Source: Cyanophora paradoxa CCMP329 (Eukaryota; Plantae; Glaucophyta). From it: a stretch of 64,000 nt of DNA. This document shows positions 1 to 64,000 of the stretch, piece by piece. A program made the position numbers and the translations under genes. The stretch spans positions 62,001 through 126,000 of the forward strand of contig QPMI01000209.1 in assembly GCA_004431415.1 (NCBI GenBank), read 5' to 3'. Position 1 is the first letter of the stretch; every line of letters begins with the position of its first letter. Under the pieces are notes generated by a model. It searched no databases. It saw only the letters and a list, made by a program, of their open reading frames with translations, and had not been told where the DNA came from.

Positions 1-1583
1 CTGGCAGCACGTGATCCCCCGCCTGACGCGGTCGGACTTCGCGCTCCCGACGCTGGCGCCGCTGCTGCGGGAGATCCAGGAGGGCCTTGTCCACGGCAAG
101 GGCTTCCACCTCGTGCGTTCCCCGCCCGCCCGCCGGCCGCCCCTCTCCTCCCCAGCAGAGCGTTCGCACGCCAGATCCGCGGGCTCCCCGCGCCGCCGGC
201 GACGACGCTGGACTCGGCGCTGGCGTTCTGGGCCATCGGCGCCCACGTCGGCGACGCCGTCCCTCAGAACGCCCAGGGCGCGCCGCCCCGGCCCGGCCGC
301 CTCTCCTCCCGCGCGGCTTCCTGATCATGACCGCTGGGCCTGGCAGGGCACGTGCTGGGGCACGTGAGGGACCTGGGGGCCGACCCCTCGCTCCCCACGA
401 CGCGCATCTACACCACGCGCGAGGCCCAGCGGTGCGGGCCGGGGGCGCCCCCGCCCGCTCCCTCCCGCCTGCACTTGAGTTCGCGACGGGGCGCGCAGGT
501 TCCACACGGACAGCTGCGACATCGTCGGCCTCATGTGCCTCGCCAAGGCGCCGGCCCCTGCTGGTCCAACCCCGCCCGCCGGACCCGAACCCGAACCCGC
601 GCCCCGCAGGCGAAGGAGGGCGGCCTCTCCTCCTGGTGCTCCTCCGTCACGGCGCGCCCGCCCCCTCCCCGCCCCCAGCGCCGGCGCCCGGTCCGACGGT
701 CCTGGGGGAACAGGTGTACAACGAGATGGCGAGGCGCCACCCCGAGCTGGTCGCGGAGCTGACGAGCGAGGCGCTCGTGTGGGACCGCAAGGGCGAGATC
801 CCCGCAGGCAAGGCGCGCCCCGGCGGCCGCACCCCCCTCGCCATCGCAGCCCTCGCCCCCCCCGCTGAACGCGCCCGCGCCCCCGCCGGCGCCCGCGCAG
901 CTGGCGTACTACAGCGGGGCGGTGATGAACTGGACGGGGGAGGGGCAGCTGAGCACCATCTACGACCGCTCCTTCTTCTTCGCCGCCCAGGCGCGCTTGG
1001 CGGCTCCGCCCCCGACGGCGAGCCCGCCCCCGCCCCCGCGCTCACGCCGCCCCGCAGCGCTTCCCGGAGGTCCCCCGCCTCACCGAGCGCCAGGTGCCGG
1101 CCGCCCCGGCAGCGGCGCTGTACCCCCCCCCCGGGGGGGGGGGGCGCGTCTGAGGTGGCGCAGGTGGCGGCGTTCGAGGCGCTGGAGGCGACGTGCGCGC
1201 GGGAGGACGTGAGCCTCCGCTTCGCCCTCGAGCCCGGCGACGTCCAGGCCCGCCCGCCCGCCCCGCCCGCCCCGGCGCCCGCCCCCGCGCCCGCGCCACG
1301 CCCCCGCCCCCTCCTCGCGCCGGCGCCGAGGCCTTTTCGGGCGCAGCTGCTCCACAACCACACGACGCTGCACGCGCGCTCCGCCTTCACCGACCACGCG
1401 CCCCCGCGCGGCAAGCGCCACCTCCTGCGCCTCTGGCTCAGCGCCCCCAACGGGCGGCCCCTCTCGGGCACCGCCTTCTCCGAGCGCTACGGCGGCGACC
1501 TCTCCTCCCCGGGGGCCCTCCGCGGCGGCATCCGCACCCCCGGGCAGGAGCCATACGCCCCGCTCGACGTCGACGCGGGGTAG
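1..1583 (+). CDS. TauD/TfdA-family Fe(II)/2-oxoglutarate-dependent dioxygenase (5'-partial, 9 visible introns)
   Basis: Spliced translation gives GKGFHLIRGLP...QNAQGHVLGHVRDLG...RIYTTREAQRFHTDSCDIVGLMCL (HxD motif), WDRKGEIP, and QLLHNHTTLHARSAFTD...RHLLRLWL (distal His and 2OG-binding Arg). Stop TAG is at 1581-1583. Confidence 0.88.
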
Positions 1584-1809
1584 CTTCCGATGTTCGAAAT
1601 TCGAATTTGTAAAGTATAATAAAAGCAGCAAAATACAAGACGACAAATCTGCACGCGACTGGTGATGCAATTGAAAGGGATCCCGAGGACGCGCTCGAGC
1701 TCGCCACTATACGCCGAGCGTCTAGCTTATAGCCAGAAGTGATCATGAAACGAGAGTATACGTACAGCGAAAAGAGAAAACGGATGTGAAGGGGCGGCGA
1801 GGGGCGGGG

Positions 1810-2515: not shown

Positions 2516-2543
2516 CCAGTCGTCTCGCCAGGCTGTCGGCAGG

Positions 2544-5500
2544 ATGTTTGATGTCAATCCGGACGGGTACAGGAGCCGGCTCGCTGTCATGGCCGCCGAA
2601 GAGGAAACGCGCGGGGAGTTCGAGGAGCTCGACCGCCTCCGCACGATCAAAACTGCGGCGGCCGAGCAGCTGCTCAAGTCCCGCCTGGGCGCCAGCTTTC
2701 GCAGCGGTCTCATCGGGCAAATTGAACTTGATTTCGACGAGGAGGACTGCGTCGTGAGCTTCCACTGCGTGCGCCGCCGTGCACCCCAGCCCGCCGCCGC
2801 CGCAACCTCCGCGTAACGCCCTAACCGCCGGACGGCGTACAGAACTACAAGGAGCTCGGCTTGCAGCCGGGAGTTTTGATCAGGTGCTAACGCGCACGCG
2901 GGGTCGGGGACGTGGACGCTGGGCCGGCATGACTGGTCAAGCTCCGAGCCTTCCTGACCTCTCGTGCCCGCAGTGTCACTGGCTCTCCGAAGTGCCTAGG
3001 CGAGAGCTTTATCCTTTTACAACGCGCGAATAATGCATAGAGGCCGCTCCGAGCTCGAGGCGGGCTGGCCCCAGCCTGGCCGGGGCTCGGGGCTGACGCC
3101 GCCGTCTAACGCCATCCCGTCTCCGCCGCAGGTGCGTGGGACGTCACGAAGAGCATCCCTATCAATGGTGAGCTTGAAAAGCGCCGCGGCGGCGCTCCCG
3201 CCGCCCGCCGCCGCCGCCGCGCGCACACGAGCTCGAGCGGCGGGCCGACACGAGGCGGTGGGCTGAGACGACGTGCCTGCAGAGCACGGCGGGCTATTTA
3301 TCCACATCTCCAAAACGTTGCTTCCCTTCGGTGCGGACGCCGCGGGATTCGCCGCGGCGCCCTGTGAGCTCGACGGCCGCGCAGAGTTCAAGTTCATCAT
3401 CCGCAAGGACGACCGCATCCTCTGTGGGCCCATTCGATCTCACATACACGAAAACATTCGATCCGGCCCGACCCTCCGTGCGCAGGGCAGCGCGGCTCGA
3501 ACTTCGCGATCGGCGCCAAGATGCCGGATCGGTTCCACATTTACGCCGATATGTTCATGGGCGAGGGTACGCCGTACCCGGCCCGCCGCGACGCCCGCGC
3601 GCATGTGCCGGCCCAGACAACGACGGCGCCGGCCGGCAGTGACGGACGCGAAGAAGAAGCCCATCACGTACAACGACTACAGCTGGAACCACTACGCGTG
3701 TGCCCGCCCCCGCTTCGAGTGCCGAGCGGAGGGAGATGCTGACGACCCGGCACCAGATGGGCCCTCACGAACAAGAACTCGTGTCAGGTCACGGTCGAGG
3801 CCGACCACATGTACCCCCTCTGCCTTCCTCCTCCCCCTCCCCCTCCTGCCGCCGAACGGCGTACCCCTGCAGGTACCTGGATCCTTCCTGCCGCATGCGC
3901 CGCCTCCTCGACAAGGTTCTACCCCACGCTCCGTACCCCTCCCCCCCTGCAGCCGACGTGCCCCTCCGTCCCCCAGGCGATGGCCGCGCTCGACAAGGCG
4001 CTCAACGTGCGCGCGTACCCCTCGGGCCGCGCAGCCCCGCCGGCTGCCGGTCTGATCGATGATGCGGGGCGCGGGGGCAGCCGCCGCGGCACAGCGAGGA
4101 GGACCTCGAGCCGCTTCGGGGCCGGCTGCGCGCCCTCGTCGCCCGCATCGACGCCCTCCAGCCGCTCCTGACCTCCCCCGAGGCGAGCGTGGCCCGCGGC
4201 CGCTCGCGCGGGGCCTGACGAGGCGGGGGGCAGGACCTGGGGGCGCTGGAGAGCCTGCAGAGGTACGTGGAGCTCTCCGCGGGGCAGCCGCACGGCGGCG
4301 AGGCCGGCGAGGCAGCCTTCCGCGTCGCCGCCGCCCAGGTCCCGCCCCGCACCCGCCCCGCCCGCCCCTGCCCCAGCGCGGCCGGCGCCGACCGGGGCCC
4401 GCCCGCCCGCAGGCGGCTGCGCTGATCGAGCGCGCCCGCGTCTCCCTCAACGAGGCGCCGGTGGGCCTGCGGGCGGTGCGGGTCGGGTGCGCGGAGGGAG
4501 CGGCCGCCGGCTCGCGGGGCGGCTGGGCGGAGCTGGCGTGGGCGCACGGCCCCGCCGGCGCCCCGCCGGCGTACGTCGTCCTCAAGGACGGCGTCCCCCT
4601 CGCGACGCTGCCGGGCAGCGCGACGGGCTTCAGGGCCGAGGGCCTCGCGGTGGGCGCCACGGCGGCGCTCTCGGTGGCGGCGCGGACGCCGCACGGGCCG
4701 GCGGCCGGCCCCGTGTGCGCCACGCCGGCGGCCGAGGGGCCGCAGCTCAGCGCCGCCCTCGCCGGCCCCACCAGCGCCCTGCTCGCCTGGACGGTCCCGG
4801 CGGTGGCGGCGGGCAGCGGGCCGGTCCTCTCGTACGACGTGGAGGCGAACGGGCAGAAGGTCGGGAGCGTGGAGGCGGGGGCCGGCAAGCCCGGCGACGG
4901 CCCGCTGACGTTCACGGCCGGCGGGCTGCGGCCGGGCTCGACTGTCGTCTTCCGCGTGGTCCCCGTGACCAAGGCGGGGCCCGGCCCGGCCTCGGCCCCC
5001 GTGCCGCTCCACATCGGCGCGGCGCCGCCCGTGCGCGCCGGCGGCTCGGACGCCGCGCTCGGGTTCCGCGCGGTGCGCGTCGGGAGCGCGCCGGGGGCCG
5101 CCGCCGGCGCCGCGAGCGGCTGGGCGGAGCTGGCGTGGAGCCACGGGCCGCACGGCGCCCCGGCTGCCTACGTCGTCCTCAAGGACGGGACGCCCCTGGC
5201 GGCCCTCGGCGGCAGCGCGACGAGCTTCAGGGCCGAGGGCCTCACCGTCGGCGCCCCCGCCGCGCTCGCGCTGGCCGTCGGCTCGCCCCAGGGGCCCCTC
5301 GCCGGCCCCGTCGTCGTCACGCCGGTGGCCTCGGAGGCGCCGCAGCTGACGGCGGCGCTGTCGGGGGCGACGAGCGCGCTGCTGGCGTGGAGCGCGCCGC
5401 AGGGCGCCGCCGCGCCGGCCCTCTCCTACGATGTCGAGAAGGACGGGGAGAAGATCGGCAGCATCGACGCCGCCAAGGCAGGCGAGGGTCCGCTCACCTT

Positions 5501-7744
5501 CGCCGCCGCCGGCCTCGCCCCGGGCGCCACTGCCGTCTTCCGCGTGGTTCCCGTGACCAAGGCGGGGGCCGGCCCCGCCTCCGCCCCCGTGCCCCTCTTT
5601 GTCGGTTCCACCCGCCCCGGCCCCACCTCGAGCTCCGAGGCGCCGGTGGGCCTGCGGGCGGTGCAGGTCGGGTGCGCGGAGGGGGCGGCGGCCGGCTCGC
5701 GGGGCGGCTGGGCGGAGCTGGCGTGGGCGCACGGCCCCGCTGGCGCCCCGCCGTCGTACGTCGTCCTCAAGGACGGCGTCCCCCTCGCGACGCTGCCGGG
5801 CAGCGCGACGGGCTTCAGGGCCGAGGGCCTCGCGGTGGGCGCCACGGCGGCGCTCTCGGTGGCGGCGCGGACGCCGCACGGGCCGGCGGCCGGCCCCGTG
5901 TGCGCCACGCCGGCGGCCGAGGGGCCGCAGCTCAGCGCCGCCCTCGCCGGCCCCACCAGCGCCCTGCCCGCCTGGACGGTCCTGGCGGCGGCGGCGGGCA
6001 GCGGGCCGGTCCTCTCGTACGACGTGGAGGCGAACGGGCAGAAGGTCGGGAGCGTGGAGGCGGGGGCCGGCAAGGCCGGCGAGGGCCCGCTGACGTTCAC
6101 GGCCGGCGGGCTGCGGCCGGGCTCGACTGTCGTCTTCCGCGTGATCCCGGTGACCAAGGCGGGGGCCGGCCCGGCCTCCGCCCCCGTGCCCCTGTACGTC
6201 TCGGCCGCGCTCCAGGCGCCGGCCTCGCCTGCGGCTTCGTCGCTGGCCGTGGCGCCGGCCGACGGGGAGCACGGCTCGCCGGCGCGCCCCACGATGGGCG
6301 CCATCCGCCGCTCCTCCCTCGGCACCTCCGACGGCGAGCTCGCCAGGTGCGGGGTACCCGATTCTAGGCACACCCGGCCGGCGGACCCTGAGCCAAGGCG
6401 CGCGCAGCCCCGAGTCGAGCATGGACCGCGGCAAGGCCCTCGCGATCTCTAACGAGTTCCGCGTCCTCGCCCGCCTGGTACCCCCCACCACTCGCCCCCT
6501 CCACCGACGCCTGCGAAACGCCGTACCCCCCGCAAAGGTGCCGGGGAAGGAGGCGGAGCTGGCGGTGCTGGAGGCGATGCTCTCCAACGCGGACGCCCTC
6601 GCCCGCGCGCCCCGCGCTCCCGCCCCTTTCCCTCCCGCCGGCTCCCGTCTGAGGTGCGGGCAGGCCTGCGGGGGGAGCTGGCGGGCCTGCGGGAGCGCGA
6701 GGCAGCGCTCCTGCGTGACCTCGAGGCCGCCCGCGCCACCGCCGCCGCCGCCAGCGCCGCCGCCGCCGTGCCCCAACGCCCCGCCCCGCCCCCGCCCCGC
6801 CCCGCCGTGCTGAGCCCGGGCCGGCGCGTGCACGCAGGAGCGCTGCCGCGCGCTCGAGGCGGAGCTCGCCGAGCTCTTGGCCCTCCTCGCGGTGCCCGCC
6901 CGCGCGCGCGCCCCTCCCGAATCGGGCCCCGGCCGGATTCGAACCCGCGGGGCGCGCGCAGGCCAAGGAGAATGAGCTCGAGGCGCTGCGGCGGGAGGTC
7001 GAGGGCCTGCGGGTGCGCGCCCGCCGCCGGCCGGCCCTCCCGCTCTGCCCCGGTCCGAGCGCGGGTGCGCCCTCCAGTCGCAGAAGGCGGGCCTGGACGC
7101 GCGCGTCGCGGAGCTCGCGGCCGCCGGCGACGCCGCCAAGGCCGAGGCGCGCCCGCCCCGCAGAGCCGGCCCCGCGCCGCGGCCGCGGCCGCCGCCCTCA
7201 CGCGCCGGGGCAGATCGCGGCGCTGAAGGCGAAGCTGGCGGCCGCGGAGGCCCGCGCCGCCGCCCTCGAGCGCGACCTGAAGGTGCCCGCGCGCGCCCCT
7301 CCCGCATCTCCCACCTCTACCTCCGTTCCGAGCGCCGCGGCAGGCGCGGGAGGGGGAGCTGCTGGAGGTGGCGAGGGAGGTGGCGGCCATCCGGGACGCC
7401 AGCACCGGCATCTCCCGCGACCTCGACGCCGTGCCCCCCCCGCCCCCCTCGCCCGCCTCGCCCGCCTCGCCCGCCCACGCGCGGGGGCGCCAGATGGCCG
7501 ACCGGAAGCTGGACGTCCACGCCCGCGTCTGCATCTGCGGCCGGCAGGCCCCGGGTGGCGGCCCCGGCCAGGCGAGCCCCCCCCGCCGCCCCCGTACCGG
7601 TCCCGGCTGAGAGGCGCCCGCTCACGGCAGCACCGGCAGTCGCCGGGGAGCGTGAACCCGGCGGCGGGCCGGCGGGGCGGCGGCGGCGGCAGCGGCGGCG
7701 GCCACTCCTTTCGCAGCGTCGCCTCAGACGACAGCGCCTTCTGA
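2544..7744 (+). CDS. multidomain protein: CBM20 starch-binding domain + six fibronectin type III-like domains + C-terminal coiled coil
   Basis: Spliced exons at about 2745-3520 read VVSFHCNYKELGLQPGVLISVTGSPKCLGAWDVTKSIPIN...FEFKFIIRKDDRILWQRGSNF, matching the CBM20 pattern (G-S...LG-W, EFKF, W-x-x-G-x-N). The exon at 4412-6346 encodes three units of two FN3-like domains (LAW...YVV...F-A-GL; LAW...SYDVE...GLRPGSTVVFRVVPVT-AG-GPAS). Heptad-rich exons follow at 6400-7520. Stop TGA is at 7742-7744. Confidence 0.72.
4452..6194 (+). repeat. intragenic A-B-A' triplication of a two-FN3 unit; A (4452-5009) and A' (5637-6194) are nearly identical 558-bp copies
   Basis: Both copies start gaggcgccggtgggcctgcgggcggtgc and align colinearly with few substitutions. 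The middle unit (about 5056-5598) is clearly more diverged. Confidence 0.9.
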
Positions 7745-8038
7745 GGGCCCGTGAGGGCCCTTTTCCCGGCCGGACCGCGCACGGGCGCCGTGCCCTTGTT
7801 CTTTACTTTCTGTTCTTTCCTGCACAGAGCCCCCTTCGCTGTTGCGGAGGGGGTCCCATAATTGACTTAGCTTTTAGATGTGTACCTTGCCGCAGGCACG
7901 CAGTGTAGATCTTGAGTAGCCGCAAATTACCGTGTCACAGCTACGATGCTTATTGTAATTTGTAAAGTACACCGCACATTTTCCCCTGACCGTCGGACTC
8001 TAGCCCAGTGTCTGTGTAATTATATAAAAAGCTTGCAA

Positions 8039-8332: not shown

Positions 8333-8800
8333 TGTCGTTCAACGGTTCAGCTGCAACGTACGCGTTAACTGGGCAGAGTTTAAATGGCGTACCCGAAGCA
8401 GGTGGACGCGCACGAAGCAGACTGTACCCCAGGTCCATTGACTTTGGTTGCCTCAGGGACTCGACTGCGAGTTTTTTTCGTCCTGCTTCTCGTACCGGTA
8501 TCAACGATCAGTGCATTGTTCGCGGTCGCTGTTCATCGCGTCACGCAACTTCGGCGAGCGAGGAGCTACCGGTAGTCGCGTCATTCGAAGTCGCAGCTAG
8601 CCGCGGCGAGCATCCCCCGAAGCCTCGAGCTCCCGGCCGCGAAGTCGCCGTTCGTCCCTCAGCATCCCTCTAGCCGAGCCTCCCGTATTCCCGGTGCGTA
8701 CGTGCGTCAACTCGCGTTTTTCGGACGCGGCCGGGACGCCCGCGTCCGGCTCTCGGCTTGCGCTGAAAAACGTCATCGCTGCAGACAAACACGCGCAACG

Positions 8801-13726: not shown

Positions 13727-14578
13727 GCGCCCAGCGCCACTCCGAGCCATCAACCCTACAGACCAGTTCATAGTACAATAAGTATACCGGTTACCAAACC
13801 TACACAGCAGAGTAGTTTGTAGTGTACGTGTAAAGTGTTTTTTCATAGGCGCGCCGGGCCTCGAATTATGTTGATCGTTATACTTTCAGTTATTGCAACG
13901 TTGGGGTGTAACTTTCTTCTTTCCCGAGGTAGACCAGTTCGGTCCTCAGGCAGCATTGATGTTGTGTGTTGAGTGTCACAGTGTGCAGCGCTGAGTGTAC
14001 TTTCCTTTCGCATGTGATCCTGAGAGAGTTCAGTGACAGCCGATTTTGAACGTTAGCGGAGAAGGTTGTCTATCAATATCGATATCTCAGCGTTAGCTGC
14101 AGTGACCGATTTTCTCCAGACAAACCAGACAGTTGATCTAGATTTAGAGTGCCGGCGCCGCGGTTCCTTGTCCAAATTAAAGCGGTGTAGTCCGTCGCTC
14201 CCCCCGACCTCGCACACCTGCGGCTGCAGCTGCGCACGCGCCTGATGCACCTTTCAAGGCTGCTCATATCACATATACGTATACTGGGCTATGATCGATA
14301 TCATGAAATAGGCCCAGCTGCAGGGCGGATCGGAGGATTCTGCGAGCAGATGTAGAGGCCTCCGGATCCGGTCCCGACGCGCCGGCCCGCGCGCCGGCCC
14401 GCGCGCGGCCCGCGGCGCGGCCGTGACTCGGTGGAGTTCCACGTGCACGCCTCTACGTAACTTGCAATTGGGACTCCGGGAAGATCTGGCACTTGCAACG
14501 CCGAACGCTCGCACTAGCGGACGTCGAGACGAAGCTCTGGGCCTAGCGAGCTTCAAGGCTTAAGCCGCTCGCGCGCGC

Positions 14579-18060: not shown

Positions 18061-18135
18061 CGCCGAACGCGTGGTCGGCCGTCAGGGCGCGCGGCGCTAG
18101 TACTGCTAGCGCTTGATGACGTCGGCCTGCTTGCG

Positions 18136-18174
<39 letters not shown>

Positions 18175-18235
18175 CCGTGAGACCCGGAGCCAGAGGGCCG
18201 AGGAAGGGCGCGGGGGGGCGGCGGGGGCCGAGGAA
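18061..18235 (-). repeat. degenerate tandem copy of the last intron/terminal exon of the acid phosphatase gene
   Basis: 18091-18130 (gcggcgctagtactgctagcgcttgatgacgtcggcctgc) matches 18299-18332 (gcggcgctagtactgcttgacgacgtcggcctgc). The flanking cgtgagac...gccagagggccga is also duplicated, and the copy contains a poly-G tract at 18139-18173. Confidence 0.75.
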
Positions 18236-18304
18236 AAGGAATAGTACTAGTACGGCAGAGCGAAACGGCTCGAACGGGATTCGGTCGCCATGGTCACGGC
18301 GGCG

Positions 18305-20465: not shown

Positions 20466-20738
20466 CGCCAAGCGCGCCGCCGCCACCGCACGCCGGTCCT
20501 AGCGCCGCACGCCGCCCTGCGGTACCAGCGGAACCGCTGCGTCCGCGTTGTCTGGCGCGCTGGGGCTGCTGCGCTCCTGTCGGCCGGCCGCGTGGGGATT
20601 CTTTCAGGCGTACCCCTCTAGTGCGCTGGTAACGCGGCTGGTTGCGGCTCAAGCAACACGCCTGTGCAATACGCGCGCGAGCAAGGTGCTCGTCCAGACA
20701 ACACGGCGCCTCACAAAGGCGCCAGCGGGAGGCGGGGA

Positions 20739-27990: not shown

Positions 27991-28559
27991 TTTCTGAACG
28001 AAATGAAGTGAAAAGGGGTCTTCGCTGGGCGGCCTAGGCGAGTGGAAGGCGAAAAAGCTGGAGGCTGGACGGGTACACTGATAGAACGACGCAACGACAA
28101 GCCTAGGCGCGGCAGCGCAGCGGGCGGCAGCGGCTTCGATAACGCGACCCCCCCGCACGAGGAGCTCGTTCCAGGCAACTTCCAGCCCTCCGACTGTCGG
28201 TGCGCCCACGTGCACCGGAAAACGCGGCCGGCTCGCTCAGAGCCGCGCGGGGCGACGCTGCGCCTTGGCGACGCTTCTGTCTGTTCTCTGATGCGGTCTT
28301 TTTCCCCGTGCATCTTGCAGCCGCGGGCCGCTAGCAACCGTGCCGAAGTCATCAATCGCAAGCGTCCGGAGCGCAGCGGCGACGAGCGTCGTCCTTACAC
28401 ACAGCCAGCTCTTTCCATTCTTCCGACTTCCGGTGCGTGGGCGACCCTGCGCATGCGGACCGCCCGCACGCGGCCGCGCGCGCGCTTGCAATTGCAATTG
28501 ACCAAGGCCCATGGCCAGGCCTTCAAGCTTGCGCCAGTCCTGCTGCAGGCCTGTATAAA

Positions 28560-31500
28560 ATGGCCAGATGCAGCTGCTGTAAGAGGCAAGGACCACAGAG
28601 CCTGCTCAGCGGCCCCCGGCCAGCGCTTCTTAAAGATCACGAGAGCGATTTCAAGAAGGCCAGCGATTACCGAAGCTTGAACGAGCGAATTCAAGAGGTC
28701 CAGCGTTCGAAACGCGATGGATATTCTGACAAGATCGACGAGATGCTGAAAAGAGACTTCGAGCAGTTCAGCAGTGCGTTCGACGAGCGCATAAACGCAC
28801 TCGAAGAACAAGTAGCGGAGAAGGTGCTCTCGCCGTTCGACTTCCGCTGCTTCATGTATCGCGTGTTACAACTGCTGTGGTGCTCTCGCCTATTCATCGA
28901 TGTATCGCCTCGCGATCTTCTTGATATGGCATGCAGGATCATCTCGTGCCGACGAAAGATACAGAAACAGTTCCCAAAAGTAGATCCGCAAGCTTGGGAA
29001 GCTCAGTACATCCACCACTGGTGAGTTTTAACTTGCGATATCGATTGTGCACTATATGCATACACGTATACGTGCGTATTAATCTGCACCATTATCGTTG
29101 GCCTCAGTACTGCTCACAACTTCCTCATCATCGCCAAGACTCTGTACAGCCGCCAAGCCGTCTCTGCACATGCCCGCCTACTTTGGGACGAATTGTTGAA
29201 GAAGGCCAAGGGCACGAAGCTCTCATTCAACATCACCCTGGAGTCCGGCGAGACGGTGCTTTTCGACACGCAGGACCTGTGGTTCGGCGATGGAGGCACG
29301 AAGAGGGCAGAGATTCTCGGGCCAGCAACTGGAAGAAGGCGGAAGAATAACGAGAAGCCAAGGCCGCTGAGCGAGCTCTTCCATGCGGGAGAAGCCATCG
29401 ATCTCGCTATCAAGTACGCCGAGCTGGCGGAGACAGGCGCCAAGACCCTCGATGTCGGTGACGACATAGATGAGCAGCAAGTGAAACACAGGAAGAGTGT
29501 TCGTGCTGCCATCCTGCTTGGAGATTGCTACAAACTTGACTGCGGTCCGTACTGCATGCGCAACTGCATGAGAAGAAACGAACTGACTCCCGCTGTAGAG
29601 ATAGGATTGGAGGACGGCGCTACACGCCATTTTCCCGAGAAGGCCGTGGAAAATTACAAGAACGCTCTCCAGCTTCTCGAAAAGTCCATCCTTCCAGCCA
29701 AAGAGACGCAAGAGCTCCGCGAGAACGTTACAGAAAAGCTGGTCGGTCCTAGAAATTCGAACCTTGGATCCAGATACCTTCTCATTGATCACTTTCCCCC
29801 TAACCTTCTTTTATTTCGTTTAGATTGCTACATATGCTGAGCACCTCGCCAAAATGCGGGGAGCTCTCCAATTCGTCGAGTGCATCAAAATTTATTTCTG
29901 AATATGAAATGATCATGGTCATGATCATAAATACCGCCGCGCAGGACTCGCGATTATCAGCGCTCTCAGATTCGGGAGGCACTCGACCTTCAACGCGATC
30001 TGAAAGCGTCCTCCAGAAAGCCTCTCGCAGGTTCGGCCAATAACATTTTGAATCGCACATTTCGACCGTGATGCTGTCATGCAGACCGTGAGCTGAGCGA
30101 AAAGAGGTATAGGCTCGGCTACATGCTCGTCGACGTGCGCAGCCGCACGCGCTCGGTTTCTTATCGTTTTCACATAGGAGTTTTCTTATCAGTCGCACGC
30201 AGGAATTTTTCGCGTTCGAAGATGCTCGGATTCAGCTCGAGTTGGAGCACGAAAGCCTTGATGCGATCCAACGTGAGGACGGTGCAGCCCTGCAGCAACG
30301 AGGCTGGACACGGTGGGACTTCAAGAGGCGCCTTTGCGAGGTCAAGGCGGCGTACGCCCGTGCCCTCATGCACGGCAGTGCGGCTTCCTCGGGGGACATA
30401 GCGGAAGCCGTTGGCCTTCTCCAGAGTGCTTGCAAACTCGCCAACAACCTTGTACAAGAATCACTGAAGCTTTCGCCCCGAACGAAATGCCGGGCAATGT
30501 TCGAGGAGGTGTGCCACTTTCCGATCGCGAGCCCATAGCTGTATATTAATTCGAACGATTTTGTTCTGGTACCCACACAGGCCGTGGTCCTCATCACTCG
30601 CTTCGACGCGGAGGACGAGCAGTCTCTCCTCAGACATGCTCGTGCGCGTTTCTTTTATCGTTTTGTGGGCTTGCGAACACGACGTATACGGAGCTCTGAT
30701 CATGTCGGCTGCCGTTGCTGCATGCGCAGTCAAAGGCACGCTGGGCAATTACAACGAGAAGGAGTATCTGGGCCACGTGAAGAACTCGGAGTCCCTCCTT
30801 CGGAAAGCCGCGCGCCTCATCGTGGACCACAGCATACGGGACGAGCGGCTCGTGGACGACGTCGTGTCTAACCTCAAGGTAGCCCTCGGGAATATCCGGG
30901 ACAAGACCATCACGGACGACGACCTGCGGCGAGAAGCGGATCCCATTCGAAGGCTGCTGGATTATCAGAAGGAGCTGAGTGCGTGGGCTCTATTTTCGCG
31001 CACGCCGCTCCCATGTAATTTTAATGGTGTTGTTCAGGCGCCTCGACAGCATCCAGCGATGCAGACTCGGTCGCGATTGCAAGTGCGACCGCTCCCGTCG
31101 TTGCTCCTCGTGCGCTGCTCCTCGTTGCGCTGCCCGCGTGCACTCTCTGAGGAAGCGCGTCTTTGCAGAGAACGCCAAAGCTTCGGCCCCCGTTTCGGCT
31201 GCCTCCAGCAGTGGCCGCTCGAACAGGGACGCCGCCGCCCGTGCGCTGCTCCCATAGCTAAAAATCGCTCTAGATCTGCCCGCACGCGCACGCTAATGAC
31301 TACTTTCCCAGCAGCGGTCGAGGTGGGCACGACTCTGGAGGGCGCGTCGCTTACGGTGGAGACCAATTGCAAGCACGTAGCGAAGAAGGGGAAGTTTGGA
31401 TCCCCTGGGCCGGCCACGCGGGCAGGGCTCCCTGCACGTGCGTACCCCGCCACGCATCCCGCGGTCGCGGCGCCTCGCCCTCACAGCGGCCGACAGCAGC

Positions 31501-33086
31501 CAATGTGGCCGCCCCCGCGCCCCCTGGCCTCTCGTTGGAGGCGCAGTGCCGGGAGAAGTACGGGAAGGTGTGTCGCCTCGGCCCTGCTGCCATGTAGCTA
31601 TAGCGCTCACAGTTAAATCGTCCTGTGCGGCGCACACAGCCAACTCACAGTTAACATTTACAGGCCATGGTCCTGTGTGGAAAGTTGACCGCCGAGAACG
31701 CGGGCGAGGCGACGAAGCTTCTTGTGGAGGCAGCGGACCTCATCCTGGAAGGCAACATCACGGACACGGTCTTCGTTGGCGATGTCATCAGTCTACTGAA
31801 GATAGCCACGCGCCGCCGCTACGGGGATGGTGATCGTGACGTCACGGACGACGATCTGAGGGGATTGGGGGATCCCTTCCCGCGCCTGCTGTCGCACTTT
31901 AACGCGCTAGGTGTGCGGGGGCCATCCGAATGGGCCGGCGCACCAGTCCCATCTGAGCAATTCGGGTCGGGCTGCAGGGAGGGGTAACGCGCTGGCGCAC
32001 AATCCTTCCGTCTCCAGCAGTTCATTCGCGACTGCGCGTGCGTTAGCGCTGTACCCACTTGCTACAACATCTCTTTTTTCTGACCACATGCATATGCATG
32101 TGCATGGGCAGGGTACGAGCACACAGCGAACGAGGCATACTCTCCTGGCATGGCCACGCGGACAGGAACCCGTGCGCTCCGCTTCCTCCCCCCTTCCCCC
32201 CCCCATCCCATCTCCCTCCCCCCCCCCCCCTTCCCCATTCCCCGCCCACCCCCCGCACCCCCGCACCCCCCCACCCCCCCACCCCCCCCCCCCACCCCCA
32301 CCCACCCACCCCGCACCCCTCCCACACCATCCCCCCCCACCCCCCCCCCCCCCCACCACACCCCGCACCCCCCACCCCCACCCACGCCCAGCCCCCAACC
32401 CCCCTCGCCGCCCTCCCTCCGATCCCTTTCCCCTAAGCCCCAGCGGCTCGGCCGGACCATACCCCCCCTCCCCCCCCCCCCCTTCCGTCGATCCCCTCTC
32501 CCCGTCCCGTCCCCCTTCGCAGCTCCTCCTCCTCCCGCGATCCTCCGGCCCTCCTCTCTCTGTCGTACATCCCACCCCACCCCCTTCGCAGCACCCCCCC
32601 TCTCTCTCTCTCCCTCCACCGCCCTCCCCTCCTTCCCCCCCTTCTCCTCTCGCTTCACCGGTTTTCGCTCGCGAAGCCTCACGTTCTCACCAGGCCCGCC
32701 GCCTTCGCCGGCCGGCGCGAAGCAGCCCCCTGTGAAGGAGGAAGGTGCACCGCGTCGCCCGCCCAGCGGCGCCTCGCCTGCGCACGAACGCCGACGGCGC
32801 GCTCGCAGCCTGCGACGAGGGCGAGGACGACGATCGCGAGGGGGTCGGGCCCCGGATCCGGAAGCGCTCGGGGCGGCGCCGGCGGGCGGTGGTGGAGGAC
32901 GAGGAGGAGGGGCGGGAGAACGCCCCGCCGACCGCCCCCAACGCGCGGGAGGATGGCGAAGACGAGGGGGTCGTCGTCAAAGCGAAGCCGCGGAAGCGGC
33001 GGGTGGTCGCCGATGACGACGAGGAGGAGGAGCGTGGGGGCGCGGACGGCGCGTCGCGCCCGCCCCTCGCGCCCCTGCGCGCTTGA
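28560..33086 (+). CDS. large hypothetical alpha-helical (TPR-like) protein with an internally duplicated domain; start uncertain
   Basis: Exons chain in frame across GT-AG introns, e.g. YIHHC|TAHNFLIIAK...KAVENYKNALQLLEK...|IATYAEHLAK|...|EFFAFEDARIQLELE...DIAEAVGLLQSACK. The acidic/basic C-terminal exon ends PLAPLRA* at 33086. GC content is lower than in neighbouring genes. Confidence 0.5.
32180..32650. repeat. C-rich low-complexity tract (probably intronic)
   Basis: Runs of C broken by single A/T/G over about 470 bp. Confidence 0.85.
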
Positions 33087-34040
33087 GCTCGGGCTTTGGT
33101 TTCGATTTTTCGTGATTTGATCTCTCCTTTTACCTTTTGTTGCCAAGTTGCAGTAGGCATATATTCCCATTATCCTAAGTCCCTGTAGACCTGTACCCCT
33201 AGTCTGTACCTGTACCCCAATGATACCAGTCCCCAGCTAAACTATGCTGGCAACACTTTTTGACTGACTTTTTGGATTTCATTTCTAGATGTCGCGATCG
33301 TTCTCGTAGAGCGGCTAGCTGTAGGGCCGCCGAGAGCGCAAGCGTGTACCGATATTTTTCTGGGACTCATGATCAATATGCAATGCATGCGCAGTAGTGA
33401 ATTGTTTTTCTTTCACAGTACTTTTGATAGCACTCGATAACCATGTGCACGTGCCACCAGGTAGTGCCTCGACGGTCCTTTTTCCTTGTCGCATCAGTGC
33501 ACCCGTATCGATCGATAGCTCTTCTTAGTTGAATGAACAAGCATGATCATGATGCATGCGCGGGTTTCCGCTACGGAATCACACTACGGAATCCTTGTGC
33601 ATGTACATGTACAGCCGCTCAGCTCCTGCAAATTTACTACGTATACGGTACTGAATCTTCAGAAAAATAACGGAATTCGAATGTAGTAGCTATAGTACAC
33701 TGCACTTCCTGCGGGGGCCGCGGGGCGCGGCTAGATACGCGTCCTCCGAGGCTCGCGGGCGAATTCGAATCATCAAATGAAAATAGAATTTATACGTGCA
33801 CGGGCGTGATTCTACGCATACCATAATCTATCTCACCAACTGCATCCTACACTCCATCCCTCTGCGAACTATAACGCCATACTAAGCTACGCTAATCCAC
33901 CAAACTACCGTAGTACCGCTAGACTACTAGCTATAGGCTACAATCCACGGCTACTTTAATGAACAGGCCTAAGGGCGCAAGAGGAGTCCACACGGCGCGA
34001 AAGGAGAGAGTCTACAGGGCCGCGCGTGGCGGGCGGGCGC

Positions 34041-39516: not shown

Positions 39517-40343
39517 GAGCCGCACCTGGATCGGCGCTCTCTTGGGCTCTAGCTCTCGTTAGCGTTCCCCTCAATTGCGAGCTTCGACGACTTCCAGGTG
39601 AACCCGCATATGTATAGTTCTCCAGCTGCAGATGCACCCGACGCGAGCGCCTTGCACAACTGTAACCCGCCCCCGTTCCTTCCCCCAACATCGACCTCCT
39701 CCCCCTCGAGCTCCGCCAAAGCTCCAAGCACCCGGTCGCGGCGGCACCGTCGCGCGCGGGACCGTCGGACCCGCGAAAACAAATTAAGCTCCGAGGCCTC
39801 TCTCTCGCGTCGCAGCTGGTAGCTCTCGAGTCTCGAGGTTGCTTAAAGCTTGTGGTGCCCCGCCCGGGTAGACCGATCGGAGTTTTCGGCGGCACCAGCT
39901 AGCCGTCATGCAGGGCTAGCTTCTGTGGCTGTGCGCCAGCGCTCAGCGGCTAGCCGCGGCACCGGTGTCTGCAAGCATTGAAGCTGCGGTCGCCCCGCAG
40001 CTTCTGGTCCGACGGTCTCTACATCTAGATCATTGCTGAGCCGCTAGGCCTAGGCTAGATCAATTTCAGTGCAGCTATCGGCTATCCAAGCGCTTCTAGA
40101 TCTCGCCAGCAGCGAGTTGCTCTGCGTGACGGCCGCGCATCTACACAGGTGCCACTTAGCCAAGCGTTTCCGCGGCGAGCATCGCAGCCTCACGCAGCTG
40201 GGGCGAACAAGTCGACAAGAAGCCGTCGGGGGCGACGACGAGCTAGCGAGCGCTGCTGAGCGCATGCGCAGCGTTGCTGCGTGCGCCAGAATGGAGAGCC
40301 GCAGCAGAGCGATGTGCTTGGGCGTATACAGAAGCAGATAACG

Positions 40344-56679: not shown

Positions 56680-58471
56680 CTGCCAGGCCGCTCGCGATTC
56701 GCGCTGTGGATAGCACAAAATGCATTAGATCTGTAGCTACACAACTAGCAGCACATCTGTACGTACATGCGGTCTACGCCGGGCGACAATGAGTACGGTA
56801 GGCTATGAATATTGTGGATAAAGTTCGAGTTCGCTCCGAGGCTCTGTCGATGTCGTCGCCGAGTCGAGTGTGGCCCTCAGCTGCAGCCTGGGCCTCAGGG
56901 CCTTAATTATATAAGCTTGCCCGAATTAATATTCGCCGAGTCGAAGGCCCGGCCGTTCCGCCACGATCATGAGTGTCCAAGAGCGAGCGCACTCTGTCTA
57001 GGCTAGTTATCATGATGGCAGTCTGCTGCCGCCAGTGCAAACAGTGCCAAACACTGCAACTTGGGCAAAGCAGTGCGAACTTGAAATCGGCGAGCGTTCC
57101 TCAAGGCTTCGCGATCGGCGATCGAGCGACTCGGCGAGCTGGCGGCGCCTGGCGCTACTAGGCTAGGGCCCGCCGCCGAGCCGAGGGCCGGGGGCATATT
57201 TGGGAGGGACTGGATTCACTGGAATGCCCAACTCGCACCCCCAAGGTTGCAGGCTTGCAGCGATTACTGCGGCCGGTACCGGGTACTACCGGCGCGGCAT
57301 GCGCAGCTGCAGGAAGTACTAAGACCCTCGAATTGGAATATTAATGGTACATGCACATGTATATATATGTACCCGTCTGCCGGCCCAGCCGCTGAGCATG
57401 CGCAGCGGTACCGTAGTACCAGCGGCGCGCCGGCGCCCGGGCCGGCCCGGCCGCTGCAGCTGAGCATGAGCTCGAGCCGCATGCACATGCGCACGTACTG
57501 CGGCGCGTGCAGTGCGCAGCTGTGCGCTCAGTGAGCGGGTCGACCGTATACGTACCGGTCCGTACGCCGACGGTACGCGTCCGACGGTCGGCGGCGTCGC
57601 CTGGAAGTTGCTGGAACAGGTTGGAAGGCCCTGCAGGCTGCATCGCATCGATATCATTCGATTCGCATGCGCAGCCTGAGCTGCAGGCTGCGGCTGCTGC
57701 ACTCTGCCAGGCTGGCACTGCTCCGAGCCTGCTCGGTGGTCAGCCGCTGAGCCGTCTCAGCGCCGATCGCGACTCCCGGCCCGCTGCTAGTGCTTCGCAG
57801 TGTTCGCATGGGCAGTACTAGTGCGCATGCGCACTCACTGAGTCACTGCAGCGGTGATACTTGGTAGACAGCGAGGATCCGCTCCCCGGGCCCCCATGCA
57901 CTGCGGCAGGCCGCAGCTGTCCCCCTAGTAGTGATCCTCATGCATCCGAGCGCGTGCAGCCGAGTCTGGCCGAGCTTGAGCGGCGCGCGCGCGCGCGCTA
58001 GCGCTGGCCTCCTCAGGGCCTAGGCCTAGGCCTCGTCCGATCATCTTAATTGCAAGCTAGCGCTAGGCAGCAAGCGCGCTGCAGCTGAGCTTTGCCAAAA
58101 CGTGTGGTGGCTTGGCGAGCTCTGCGACCGCAGCCCCTATCGAGCCGTGCGCGTGGGATGCAGCGCTCGCACTTCCGTCAGTACTAGTGCCTGCAGCTGC
58201 AGAACAGCACGTGAGCGCGCCAGGGGAGCAGGCGCGCTGTCTGGAGTTCGAAGAATGCCTCATCCATATGCATACGCGTTCGCTTGGAGATAGCATCCGA
58301 CTGCTGGGGCGCGCGGACGCCGGCTCGCGCGGGGCGACGATGAAGCCGAGCGTCCGCCGGCGCCGGAGCAGCTGCAGGCGCCAGCTGGGCGCGACCGGCG
58401 CAATTGCAAGTGGCTCACGGCGAGAGCTCGAGGCATCCGCCTGTGCCGCGCTCCGGCGGGGTCAGGCCTGC

Positions 58472-61400
58472 ATGCGCGTCTTCATACTTGTCGCCGTGTG
58501 CATCGCCTGGCTTCCACGCTACGAAGGTGCGCCCCTAGACAGCGCTCCCGCGCGCGCATGCGATATTTACGTGCAAATATATATCGATATCTACTAAAAC
58601 TTAATCAACGTTGCTGCTCGCGCAGCGGTCATTCTGCCGACGACCGGCGTGCACCTGAACGACCTCAACCCCAAAGCCCTCAGCCTCGCGGGCGGCTACA
58701 TCGCGCCGCAGCCCGCCGCCGAGCTCGACTGGAGCAGCGCCACGATGCAACTCACGGTCGAGCTCTGGTTCGAATTCGCGCTCGCTGTACGCTTCGGTGG
58801 TCCTGGTGCTCGGCGACCGACGCGCCCGACCGCAGGCTCAAGCCGAGTGCGGAGTCGGCGAATGCATCGGACGTGCGGGGCATCTTCGTCCGGGGGGACC
58901 CGGGGACTTCGGATGTAGATTTCGCCCTCGTGCGCCCCCGCCCTCCCTCTGCTCTTACCCCCCCCCCTCCCCCCCTCCCCCCCCTCCCCCCCCCCCGCCC
59001 CCCCCCGCAACCCTGCCCAACCTCCGACCTTCGTATTCCCATGGCCGCCCCTGTTCGAATTCTCTTCCCCCGCTTCCCATCCCCCTAGGCCTTGCCTCTC
59101 CAAGCTTAAGCCGTAAAATTGCCTCCATAAACCGCTGCACATCATCCGCTCCAACGCGGCTATAGCTACTCCTATCCTCGTCGAAACTATAATTGCCCAG
59201 CTGCAGGCACGCGCGCGCGCGCGCAACGGACAGCTGACGCGATGCTCATCTCGCAGATCGTGACTGCCGGGGCGCTGCGTGTGGAGCGGGCGCGAGGAAC
59301 CGTGCAAACTGAGCCAGTTCTGGTCGCTTCCAAGGTGATTTCGGCTATTATCACATGTCGCATCCAGCCTTATCCCCTGCTGACTCGATGAGCCGCACGC
59401 GTGCGCTGCAGTGGACGCACGTGGCGGTGTGCTTCCTCGCAGAAGAGACGAATGCGTCCGCCTCGATTTACGTGGACGGCACGCTGCGCAAGACGGGACC
59501 CCTGCCAGCTGCGGGCGGTGCTTGGACGGGGCCGCCAGTCATCGGCGCGGCGCCCTTTGCGGGCTCATTGGCAGCCGCGCGGGCGTTCACGGGTGAGTTT
59601 GGATCTCTTAACTCTGTGCCGGAGGCGATCTTTGCGTTTACCGGACGGGGGCACCTTTGCGATCGCGAGCAGGTCTCATCGACGAAGTCCGAGTCTGGGG
59701 GCGGTTACTTGCTGCGGACGAGCTTTCCTCTATTGTTCACGGAACATTTGCAATTAATTTCTCATCAGCAAACTCAACATCCGAATCCGCAAACTCAACA
59801 TCCGAATCCGCAATGCGCCTTTTCTACAGGTTGATTTCGGATTTACTGCTTCGCGCTTCTGTACATGTGGCAGCGGCTGAAACCAACCCGCTGTGCAGCT
59901 TCGACCAGGATCCGGACACAGCGGAGTTTACGACGAGAGACGTGAGTCCCGCGGCTGCACATCCAGCGACGTTCTACGATGCCGCTGGATCGGCGCTCAG
60001 CACACCGTCGCCCTTGGTGCAGCGCACCGTGCAGAGCGCGACCCCGGACAGGACTTCCTCCGTCTCCTGCCCCGCATACGCAGCGATCCCCGGGGACACA
60101 ATACGGTGAGCCGTACGCGTCTGTTCCGCTTGCGCGATTGCGACCTCGGTATTGCTTACGTGCTGTTTCTCGCGCCTTAGTTGCACCGTAGCCATGCGAC
60201 GCTCCAACTCCGCTGTCACTTCCGAGGCCTCCTGGCTGCGCGTCGCCGTGTCCTCTTCCACCACCGTCCGCGCCACGCTCGGGCCCCTCTCTCCGGCAGA
60301 ACCGAGTGCCAGGGCGGGTCTCGTTGTGTTTGACGTGACTTTCCCAGCCTCGAATCCCTCCACCGGTTCGCCTACGGATACTGGAGCGGCTTGTGACAGA
60401 TCATGGGCTATATAGAAACTCAATTAAAATTGCCGTGCAGGTCTTTTGGAGTTCGCCGTCTTAGTTCCGGCCGGCCAGGTGAGCTCGGATATTAATGCTT
60501 CAGATCAAGATCTCAATGCTTCAAGTTGGGTCTTTCTCAATGCTTGCGCAGTTGGGAGCTTCGGTCCGGACGTTCATGGCAGAGGCCACCACGTCGACTG
60601 CGTTCAACAGCTCCTACATTCAGTGGCAGACGCACTGGGGGTACTCGACCCCCTTCCCGCCGACAGCGCGGGGCGAGGTCCTGTATGGCACCTTCTACCC
60701 TCGAAGGGGCCTGAACGTCCCGTACATGATTCCCCGGTAGGCTTCTTCTGCCACTGGGAGCTTCTCAATTATTATTCGCAGACGTCTCACCCGCTCTCCT
60801 CCAGCTCTTCGATCGTCGTAAACCCGAGCCGGACAACCGGGAACGTCAGTTTTGAGTGGTGGCCGCCGGCAACGGCCTTCTGGTACACGGAGAGTCTCCG
60901 GCCGGACTACGACTCCGCTTTCCCTTTCACCATCACGTTTCACGGGGACAGCGAGATTGAGCCGACGTTGTGGGACAAGATCTGTGTGACTAGAAGGTTG
61001 GGAAACAGTGATGACGGCACAGCCATTCGGCCGAGACTGACTCCCGGTGCCAATTCCAGGTTCTCGTTTCGAGTGGCAATTGGGAACAGGTCTCTAGATA
61101 CCCCTGCCTACCCCTTCTCCGTCTGCGGTGTGCCATGCTTTAAAAATTGCATTCAGACCAACAGCTGCTAACTCGCAATCGATGAAATGCGCAGCCGGAC
61201 TGCTTGACTACGCGTGCGCCCTCCTAACTTTTTCTGTCAACGTTGGCCACATTCAAGCTCACTTGGTTTTGCGTGACCGCACCGCAGCTGGTACAATAAG
61301 TACAACGCAAGCAGGACGATGACTTTCCGATTCATTAATGTGCAGAAACTTCTTTTTCGTTCCCTTCGGAAATAATCGTTGCACAATCTTTGTAAGTTTT

Positions 61401-64000
61401 ACTTGACGTGCTTTCTGTAAAACAGTTCTGGGAATCCGCCCTCCTCTACTTGCCGCGGTACGGATATCAATGTTCTCGTTCATCGCCCATACGTCGCGCT
61501 CTCTCGAATCTCGACCTCAGGGAAAACACCGGGAGTGCAGTTCCGGAACTCGGGAATGTGCGCGGCCGCGGCCCTCGACATGATTCCCTTCCTAAAACAG
61601 CTTCTTAATTCGCAGCTAACTCGTGATGGTAGCCTCTACTTTAATGAATCCAAGGTCTTGAAATGCCCCCCTCGCGCTCGAATGTCCCCCTCTCGCTCGC
61701 ATGTTCTCGCTCATCGATATCTCTCGATCGAAATCGGCATAGACGCACTACCACATCGTCTACGTCGACCCCGACATTTTGCAGACATTCGTGAGCCATG
61801 AGCTTTCAGTTACGCTCAAGATTCGTTTCTCTGAACCCTCGTATCCGCTGTAAATACCTAGCCCTACACCGATCCTGGTGCGCGCCTGCATAAATATCGA
61901 GATTCGCGATATCGAGATCCGCGATATCGAGATTCGCGATCGAGAGAAACATATATTTGTTTATACTAAAGGAGTTCTTTTCTGAAATCATGATCAGGAT
62001 ACAAGCGAAGATTGGGAGAATTGTGAGCTTTCGAACCTCTGCATTCCTCGCTCGATCTCTTCGGTTTTAGACTGAGTATCCGTGACAAATTAATACAGGG
62101 ACCCGTCGTGGGGATACATGCAAAGCTGCCAATGTACCATGAGATGGGTTGGTGGTTGGCACATGTGCAGAATCGGGTTCAATGCGGTTCGCGGCGCCGC
62201 TCTTGTATGTTAGATCGCGATCGCTAACCGTTGGCTAAACACTCTCTCAACGCAGCTTAAAGTGTGCTTCCCTATATTCGGCACCACATGGTGTATTTAC
62301 CTCGTTTATCCGTACTTCTTCTGTGACTGGTTTGTGCACCTTCTCGATTCTGCTTTCGCGTGCATTGTAATCGCGTCCGTGGTCAGGCATCTCCCGCACG
62401 GAGACTCTAACAGAACAGCAACAATGGACCTCCGTGCGCGGGCCGCACTTGTTTGTGCCGGGCACACGTGCACGGCAGCTAATCAGATTTCTTGTCGAAG
62501 GCGATACGCCTTTTACATTTCAAACCGGGAGGTATTCGCGCTTTTGGCTTTTCCCGCGCCTCCAGTTGCATTCATGCCAGTGGGCCTACTTTGCAGCTAC
62601 AACTTTGCAAGCGGGCGGAAGATTGCCACTAGTTGGATCACGACATGCAACGAGATCAACTGCACAGGAGGTGCTCCATGAAATTCGCGATTGCCTTTCC
62701 TCATGATCGCCTCTCTGCTGAGTAATTCTCATTTACAGGGGGTTTGTCGAACTCAACGGTTTCTTCCTCATTCATGATATGCTCTTAAACATTAAAGCCC
62801 CTCATCGTCGACTTTGCGCAGTTTTATGACAACAATCAGCTAGTCTTAAATTATGCGGAAGCCACGTTTCAGCCAGATTGGCCTCAAGTAACAGACACTT
62901 GCGACTGCAATGCAATATGTTGTGGCTCTGCTGCTATGCCCTCCAAGATCCAGCTCTCGATTCTCGGGGATTCCAACCCAGCCAACTGGATCTCAAACGC
63001 GCTACCCGACCTCCCTGACGCCACCAGCATTATAGATTGTGGCAGAGACTCTGTTCCCGTGAGCCGGCGCTTTACATTCTCCGCGGCCTATTGATATTCC
63101 GCAATCCCTCGCGATCGCCTTGCGATTGACACTTTGGTTTCAGAGCGGTGTGGTCATGAACTGCACGTACGTCGGTCTATACGGGAAGCTTCCGATCTTC
63201 TATCGGTTCTGGTAATTGCTTTTCTTTGCCGTAAGATCGCAATAGCGCCAATATGGCCGCCCACCCTCTTGGCACTTGCGCGCTCGCAGGGACATGTCCG
63301 TTGTGAGCATCGAGTACACCCGCGGCACGATCAGCGACATCACGCCCTTCGATCCCCCCGCGACGACCTACTTCGTCTACACCAAGAACTGCACGTTTTC
63401 GCTGCGGTTGCATACCACCATCGAGATGAGCGGAGCGGGTACTTTGAGGGTGCGCCTCGCCATGAAGTCTACTCCAAGCGTGGAGTCTGAGAGCAGTCTT
63501 GCAGTTCTACGGAAGGAACGGCATTATTCTCGGCTCGACGGATTTCACTGTCTACGGTGCTCAGTTCCTTCTAATTTATTTACTCGTTGTTGTATTCATT
63601 GTTGTTGTTTTCGAACCCCTCCGGCAGCGTTCGCTGACGACAGCAGTTTCATGGACTGCGGGACAGTCACTGTGGTGGCCACGGGCACGGCTGTCATCTG
63701 CTTCGTCTATCCACACTTCGAAGGGCAGCGCCTCGCCACCATTGCGTCAATGTTCACCACTGGCGTGTCGGGTACGGCCGTCAACGGCTCCGCGCTACCC
63801 AGAGATTCCCTCGGCAGTGCGGCTCTTCCCGCGGACACATCGGACGCTCTACGAGTCGTCATTACCGCCGGCACCGTCTCTGGCACTATGACTGTAACTG
63901 CTGCGCCGTGCACAAACTCGGTTTCACTCTACGTCACTAGTGCGTTCTGCTCTACATCTCGCAGCTGGGCTCTTCGAACTGCCGATTCGCTAATCAGTAT
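58472..64000 (+). CDS. second LamG/pentraxin-like + Ig-repeat secreted or surface protein, related to the upstream giant gene (3'-partial)
   Basis: Signal peptide MRVFILVAVCIAWL (alternative ATG at 58340). LamG motifs: LTVELWF, WTHVAV...SIYVDG, GLIDEVRVWGRLL...EL. The motif TPDRTSSVSCP is shared with the upstream gene. The exon chain runs off the window end. Confidence 0.7.
59768..59809 (+). repeat. perfect 21-bp tandem duplication in an exon (ANSTSES x2)
   Basis: gcaaactcaacatccgaatcc occurs twice in tandem and in frame, duplicating an N-glycosylation sequon. Confidence 0.85.
61894..61940. repeat. 15-bp tandem repeat x3 (atatcgagatycgcg), probably intronic
   Basis: atatcgagattcgcg atatcgagatccgcg atatcgagattcgcg. 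Confidence 0.8.

Follow-up and report, generated by a model that had tools for sequence, protein, structure and literature searches.

A 64-kb stretch of the genome of the glaucophyte Cyanophora paradoxa CCMP329 (contig QPMI01000209.1, positions 62,001 to 126,000; G+C = 69%), hereafter the window, with positions counted from its first base, bears the marks of a recurrent insertion. Where it struck, three bases X became X-rc(X)-X, rc(X) being the reverse complement of X, with a gain of 6 bp (class I), or, in a minority of cases, X-C-rc(X)-G-X, with a gain of 8 bp (class II). Almost any X was hit in unconstrained DNA (introns, spacers and one last exon under loose constraint), and the insertions accumulated over a long time. 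That 6 bp had been inserted at 3-bp sites was the core inference of a first-pass annotation, made from the letters of the window alone; it was supported by an excess restricted to a block length (k) of three, by the 3|3|3 borders of the motif, by one pair of paralogous sequences and by motifs nested within one another.

Class I motifs were far more frequent than chance allows. The window contained 253 matches, while 67–98 were expected under global Markov models (orders 1–5) and 79–86 under models fitted to each 1-kb block (z ~15). When words of period ≤3 were removed, 206 matches were observed against 51.3 expected (sd = 7.1, z = 21.7). The first-pass annotation had named the lack of an excess over a Markov background of orders 3–5 as grounds for rejection; over orders 1–5 the excess persisted. 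Approximately 80 matches were expected by chance in the window, with an X of G and C only in nearly all of them. The observed and expected counts were 114 and 65.8 for X with three G/C, 88 and 12.8 with two, 47 and 1.5 with one, and 4 and 0.2 with none; where X had at least two A/T bases, 51 matches stood against 1.7 expected, an elevation of about 30-fold. The matches formed 208 clusters, and 186 sites were both non-overlapping and other than dinucleotide repeats. In control DNA, consisting of 632 kb of unrelated bacterial loci, there was no excess of class I (277 observed, 280 expected). The class I excess in the window is real and strong. Each of the fifteen 9-mers quoted in the annotation was present at its coordinate; between 14078 and 14470, where seven had been counted, there were nine, GCCGGCGCC at 14151 and TCCGGATCC at 14361 having been overlooked, and the chance rate it had assumed, 1/4096 per position, was too low for DNA of 69% G+C.

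The geometry of the motif was strict. Comparison of k = 2–5 with Markov expectation, which had been suggested at the outset for the whole genome with a sharp excess at k = 3 as the supporting outcome, gave exactly that in the window, and no excess at 2, 4 or 5: with words of period ≤3 removed, the k = 2 form occurred at 1.1 times expectation, the k = 4 form 5 times (7.4 expected) and the k = 5 form once (0.7 expected). Reordering the blocks returned the counts to expectation (X-X-rc, 117 versus 102–113; rc-X-X, 98 versus 104–109), and a spacer of 1–4 nt on either side of the middle block cut the excess to 1.2–1.6-fold, which is the background level of such patchy sequence. A middle block that was the complement or the reversal of X was enriched ~2.2-fold, compared with 4.0-fold for rc(X); this residue probably reflects overlap with rc(X) for those X that read alike both ways, and repeats of period 6. 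Palindromes of 6 bp numbered 2096 against 1784 expected, the whole surplus being explained by the 9-mers, and among pairs of palindromes only an offset of 3 nt stood out (3.2-fold), an offset of 6 nt not being specially enriched. The unit is therefore the 9-mer, not the palindrome. The period of six extended into the flanks at rates near chance (62 and 63 of 166, versus 52 and 49 expected); given such sharp borders and the strict length of three, a fixed, enzymatic stagger fits better than copying guided by homology.

The choice of X was broad. All but five of the 32 strand-symmetric classes were in use, i.e., 27, and the composition of X was close to background, in line with the earlier argument that an X which varies freely is no protein-binding motif. 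Under-used trinucleotides included CCC, ACC, AAC, AAA, CCA and AAG, in numbers too small to define a preference. Two further patterns were examined and discarded: the form X-rc-rc-X (11 observed, 3.8 expected) consisted wholly of tandem or G+C-rich sequence, and variants mismatched at the central base only seemed to be in excess (351 versus 162), an effect of trinucleotide repeats that fell without period-3 words to ~1.5-fold, a level like that of both neighbouring positions of the middle block.

Class II motifs were observed 34 times in the window against 8.0–8.6 expected (z ~9). The enrichment was specific to this pair of spacer bases: the mirror form, X-G-rc(X)-C-X, occurred 7 times (8.6 expected), the remaining 14 pairs were at or near expectation (the largest being G/G, 12 versus 6.8), and spacer pairs of 2 nt, for example CA/TG, showed no enrichment. 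At k = 4 there were no class II matches in the window (0.9 expected), and the control loci contained 12, where 20 were expected. X was likewise free in class II (GTT, TGT, AGA, TAC, CTA, TCA and others), and the motifs lay in the same spacers as those of class I. The one-sided forms X-C-rc-X and X-rc-G-X were barely enriched (71 versus 52.6), an excess far below the ~130 additional matches predicted if the ends had been processed independently, and so the two sides were handled together. Such coupling fits one enzyme complex acting alike at each end. The invariant C and G cannot have been templated by the target; they are compatible with an element ending in 5'-C...G-3', and no such element was seen in the window.

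These properties bear on replication template switching, in which a nascent strand would copy three bases of the opposite strand and return to the start of X, producing a micro inverted triplication. The four-point model can formally write X-rc(X)-X, and template-switch mutations, quasi-palindrome correction included, likewise create or perfect short inverted repeats in a single step; short inverted templated insertions are reported at breaks in yeast (PMC11724301). However, mutations of this kind are guided by homology and variable in length, while here the length was fixed and microhomology was lacking: switch points require it, and extension into the flanks was near chance. Only k = 3 was enriched instead of a spread of lengths, and the C and G of class II go unexplained. 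Template switching had been offered as an option in the first-pass annotation; with neither border microhomology nor a spread of lengths it loses support, and we regard it as improbable. The direct-inverted-direct topology is also shared with DUP-TRP/INV-DUP and origin-dependent inverted-repeat amplification, which are reported as triplications of kb to Mb (PMC4689423) at pre-existing inverted repeats, whereas here the unit is 3 nt and no pre-existing repeat is needed.

That the motifs arose by insertion was supported, at the level of sequence comparison, by a tandem duplicate that takes in the part of a minus-strand gene encoding the C terminus of its product (Table 1). Among other changes, the two copies differed by an exact 6-nt gap, copy A having the class I motif GCT-AGC-GCT and copy B a single GCT, and the short allele held no palindrome. 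The 6 nt present in copy A also create an earlier stop codon (…VIKR*, as opposed to …VVKQY* in copy B).

Nesting was assessed by deleting 6 or 8 nt at every motif, with mock deletions placed 15–60 nt away in 300 runs. The collapse uncovered five further motifs with A/T in X that spanned a collapsed site, while the mocks yielded 0.70 on average (sd = 0.82) and none of the 300 reached five. Four of the five were clean nested pairs, two within class I and two combining the classes, one in each order, and one belonged to a 15-mer. Imperfect copies accompanied the perfect motifs and were about as much in excess: the excess of one-substitution variants in spacers was ~111, compared with ~119 for perfect motifs, and the odd base was spread evenly over the nine positions, a pattern that steady production and neutral decay predict. 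Two arrays of coding repeats, at 4451–6258 and 45663–48936, contained indels, none of which had the present form. The first array has a period of ~590 nt, its first and third copies being 97% alike, and the second a period of ~1160 nt with copies 66–87% alike; no Pfam match was obtained for these arrays among the open reading frames (ORFs) tested.

Slippage of palindromic hexamer repeats, or selection for short palindromes as binding or restriction-like sites, would be another route to the class I form, given that the 9-mer amounts to one and a half palindromic hexamer units, that the window is enriched in period-6 repeats and that a few 12- and 15-mers exist. Yet 185 of the 208 clusters were single 9-mers without extension beyond chance, the short allele of the paralogous pair had no palindrome, and class II is no tandem repeat. 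Palindromes of 6 bp outside the 9-mers were at baseline, and X was spread over 27 of the 32 classes. This explanation is accordingly held to be very improbable.

The window was divided roughly into coding and non-coding DNA by codon periodicity. Class I enrichment was 1.4-fold in coding-like DNA, 3.3-fold in short non-periodic stretches and 7.1-fold in long non-periodic stretches. The highest counts per kb, 26, 16 and 15, all fell at 57–60 kb, where ~1 was expected in each; strongly periodic coding DNA at 10–12 kb and 44–51 kb had 0–1 per kb. The same distribution was seen within a single gene, tig00000882_g5271, where 7-residue exact matches to the protein recovered 2484 of 2493 coding nt and unbroken tblastn segments were 96–100% identical. 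The protein (EukProt EP00741_Cyanophora_paradoxa_P005436, tig00000882_g5271.t1) was the sole match of a representative search; word-based protein searches gave none. Its introns had 8 class I sites in 1857 nt, seven of them in the 1047 nt of 15 short introns, and its exons had four in 2484 nt, three of these within the low-complexity last exon. Both the periodicity split and this gene model agree with the placement of the motifs in spacers and introns that was proposed initially. The hot regions were not homologous to each other except for C-rich runs. In the densest spacer ~12% of the sequence was inserted, and the insertions totalled ~1.4 kb over the 64-kb window, counted over non-overlapping sites, of which about a quarter are expected by chance.

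Contigs assembled by Logan from four runs (dated 2012, 2019 and 2024) were compared with the window; 2012 and 2019 are also the years of the two genome papers (PMC6704402). Long contigs were available from every run and spanned the densest part, starting at 56300–56608 and ending at 58744. They showed no substitution, and three of them had no gap there; among the contigs listed, the only gap was a 1-base insertion at 56424 in X2 and X4, which lies upstream of the motifs. Base differences at 58708 and 58714 occurred downstream of the dense cluster, on a second, short contig with about half of the summed depth. Between 58676 and 58916, a second contig of roughly half depth, present in all runs, had clustered substitutions and 58 nt replaced by 76 nt; it stems from the second haplotype or from a closely related paralogue. 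Absence of the motifs from independent short reads had been named in the annotation as grounds for abandoning the idea; in the densest region the contigs reproduced them exactly, and an artefact of assembly or polishing is therefore excluded there. Artefact of any kind, sequencing error included, is scarcely credible, notwithstanding that the reference assembly was built from PacBio reads and is open to systematic error (PMC6704402). The contigs of the four runs showed almost no variation and no indel of 6 or 8 bp, and a metagenome scan with an exon of the gene encoding a hybrid-cluster protein (HCP) fusion returned bacterial HCP genes only.

A hairpin opened off-centre leaves an inverted copy of the end of the flank; this is established for excision of hAT, Transib/RAG and Mutator elements, and for the P nucleotides of V(D)J recombination. 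With moderate confidence, the motifs are interpreted as hairpin-mediated excision footprints of a cut-and-paste transposon that has C...G ends and duplicates 3 bp of its target (target-site duplication, TSD). Such an element would insert, duplicating X, and later excise, its transposase sealing each flank into a hairpin as the hAT, Transib/RAG and Mutator enzymes do. The same X would terminate both flanks and, because it does, the palindromic nucleotides of both hairpins would belong to the same rc(X), the left hairpin giving its first bases and the right its last. The two 3' overhangs, being complementary there, could pair, and ligation would yield precisely X-rc(X)-X. Should the first nick fall one base inside an element ending in 5'-C...G-3' (compare CACTA...TAGTG), the tip of the hairpin would retain that base, and pairing in the same way would give X-C-rc(X)-G-X. 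By this reasoning the scheme would account for both products, their symmetry and the coupling of the two sides.

The motifs show two features typical of such footprints: direct copies of the target, of a length usual for the family (X...X, exactly 3 nt), and between them a block, rc(X), that forms a palindrome with the ends of the flanks. Among known systems, the footprints of CACTA (En/Spm, CMC) elements likewise comprise two copies of a 3-bp target duplication around palindromic nucleotides, and the ends of these elements read 5'-C...G-3'. In carnation, the CACTA element dTac1, with a 3-bp duplication, left the palindromic scars TGCATGG and TGGCCGG from TGG|TGG (PMC3859356), each being X-rc(X)-X with two bases lost from the centre. 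The present motifs differ in retaining X twice and rc(X) in full, in varying hardly at all in form, and in having a second form with exactly one C and one G; their density is genome-shaping, whereas CACTA scars amount to a handful of revertant alleles. The excision of hAT, Mutator and Transib elements, together with V(D)J joining, shares the off-centre opening that leaves an inverted flank end; these systems have duplications of 5 to 9 bp or none, variable P lengths of 1–4 nt and frequent nibbling, while the palindromic nucleotides here always number three, the length of the duplication. The sealing of flank DNA as hairpins during excision is established knowledge, on which the Muta1 paper also bears (PMC5499845). 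The motifs are provisionally classed with hairpin-type excision scars, and what sets them apart is two invariant products and a density able to build non-coding DNA.

Several observations weigh against transposon excision. Scans of the window for elements bounded by terminal inverted repeats and a 3-bp TSD yielded nothing beyond chance, those for CACTA ends gave chance-level results and no CACTA...TAGTG pair, and Pfam searches of the window gave no transposase domain. No filled site (X-element-X) has been matched to an empty or scarred one, the sole paralogous pair being empty versus scar; this single pair moreover leaves polarity unfixed, and a deletion between 3-nt microhomologies would look alike. 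A scar of the dTac1 type, 2 nt shorter and equivalent to the k = 2 form, was not enriched in the window, nor were two products that loose opening of the hairpins would predict, X-c'-a'-X (231 versus 226–229 expected) and the non-overlapping 2+2 form (32 versus 24). The transposon scars known to us are variable in form, unlike the near-uniform products here, and we know of none reported at a density approaching seven sites in the 15 short introns of one gene. Excision of a 3-bp-TSD element through hairpins, which the first-pass annotation had put forward, has gained support from the fixed bases of class II and gone without a matching element or transposase in the window.

Transposon-free hairpin repair remains a serious rival. 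In its general form, breaks with a 3-nt stagger, spontaneous or made by an enzyme, would be filled in, capped as hairpins and reopened by the host, and this would be the main type of indel in the alga; we consider it possible, if on the doubtful side. A more particular version, in which a glaucophyte nuclease and repair route cuts with a 3-nt stagger, caps the ends as hairpins and rejoins them, sometimes with a C added to each 3' end, appears unlikely. Repair by the host would suit a signature found everywhere in neutral DNA, short introns included, in a window lacking element and transposase, and a form far more uniform than the usual scars of transposons. Against this, the C and G of class II are fixed and strand-symmetric, pointing to bases supplied by an agent, although an enzyme that adds C to 3' ends, Rev1 for instance, might in principle have the same effect, and the coupled sides fit a single synaptic complex better. 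We know of no repair pathway that forms covalently closed hairpins at ordinary breaks, or that works with a fixed measure of 3 nt. If the host route were true, it would be the main indel process of this genome, a builder of introns and spacers, and a previously unknown outcome of eukaryotic break repair.

Should transposon excision be the correct explanation, the genome would hold a dense and readable record of excisions, with decayed copies at least as numerous as the intact scars, and excision scars, more than an oddity of revertant alleles, would contribute measurably to the growth of introns and spacers, possibly as a main source of such DNA. From the two products, which are invariant, the chemistry by which a 3-bp-TSD element excises could also be read directly, namely the position of the first nick and the joining of hairpins; for the CACTA/CMC superfamily, to our knowledge, these steps have yet to be established. 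Computational removal of the scars could restore ancestral sequence, and the scars might serve as markers for dating and polarising indels in Cyanophora. The signature was not described in the literature searched, of which coverage was incomplete, nor in the 2019 genome paper, which mentions no palindromes (PMC6704402); the initial suggestion that it may be undescribed holds as far as that literature extends.

Table 1. Positions of class I and class II motifs, their clusters and associated features in the window.
Feature	Position	Strand	Remarks
Class I set, window-wide	322..62474		253 matches
Class II example, GTT-C-AAC-G-GTT	8337..8347		One of 34 sites
Nested pair	8355..8369		Inner CGT-ACG-CGT (8357-8365); minus 6 nt gives AAC-GTT-AAC
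Spacer between HCP-fusion gene and next gene	14078..14470		Nine class I scars in 393 bp
Nested pair	14292..14306		Inner ATC-GAT-ATC (14294-14302); minus 6 nt gives TGA-TCA-TGA
Tandem duplicate, ~205 nt	18064-18226 and 18271-18410		C-terminal coding end of minus-strand gene
Copy A, GCT-AGC-GCT	18105..18113		Copy B has single GCT at 18311-18313
Cluster upstream of tig00000882_g5271	28207..28517		Includes the 15-mer TTG-CAA-TTG-CAA-TTG; nine matches lie just upstream of the gene
Gene tig00000882_g5271	28743..33083	+	17 mapped exon blocks
Cluster downstream of tig00000882_g5271	33292..33936		12 class I matches
Nested pair	33924..33940		Inner class I TAG-CTA-TAG (33928-33936) within older class II CTA-C-TAG-G-CTA
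Nested pair	39938..39954		Inner class II GCT-C-AGC-G-GCT (39941-39951) within older class I AGC-GCT-AGC
Densest spacer	56800..59300		Non-overlapping scars: class I, 33; class II, 13; insertions account for 302 of 2500 nt
Class II example, TAC-C-GTA-G-TAC	57409..57419		In densest spacer

Other features of the window were noted in passing. The HCP-fusion gene (8801–13726, plus strand) combines a diflavin-reductase-like part (Pfam FAD_binding_1, E = 2e-14) with a hybrid-cluster protein (Prismane, E = 4e-7), and has the motif FCFQCEQT near 11400. ARAGORN called two tRNAs of 94–95 nt, at 1100–1193 and 9732–9826, the latter within the span of the HCP-fusion gene; both lie in G+C-rich DNA and are probably false positives. 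ORFs on the plus strand at 20642–22375 and 59355–59831 contained a DHHC palmitoyltransferase domain (E = 3e-19) and a Laminin_G_3/concanavalin-like domain (E = 5e-7), respectively. Homopolymer-like runs were present at 18139–18173, 21886–21951, 58958–59006 and 32188–32404, comprising a G35 tract, C-rich runs and a C-rich block of 200 nt; this low-complexity block lies within an 810-nt intron of tig00000882_g5271. Finally, a tandem repeat with a 15-nt unit was found at 61894–61940 (3.1 copies), the last unit of which is 2 nt short, thereby creating the 9-mer TCG-CGA-TCG at 61934 by chance.

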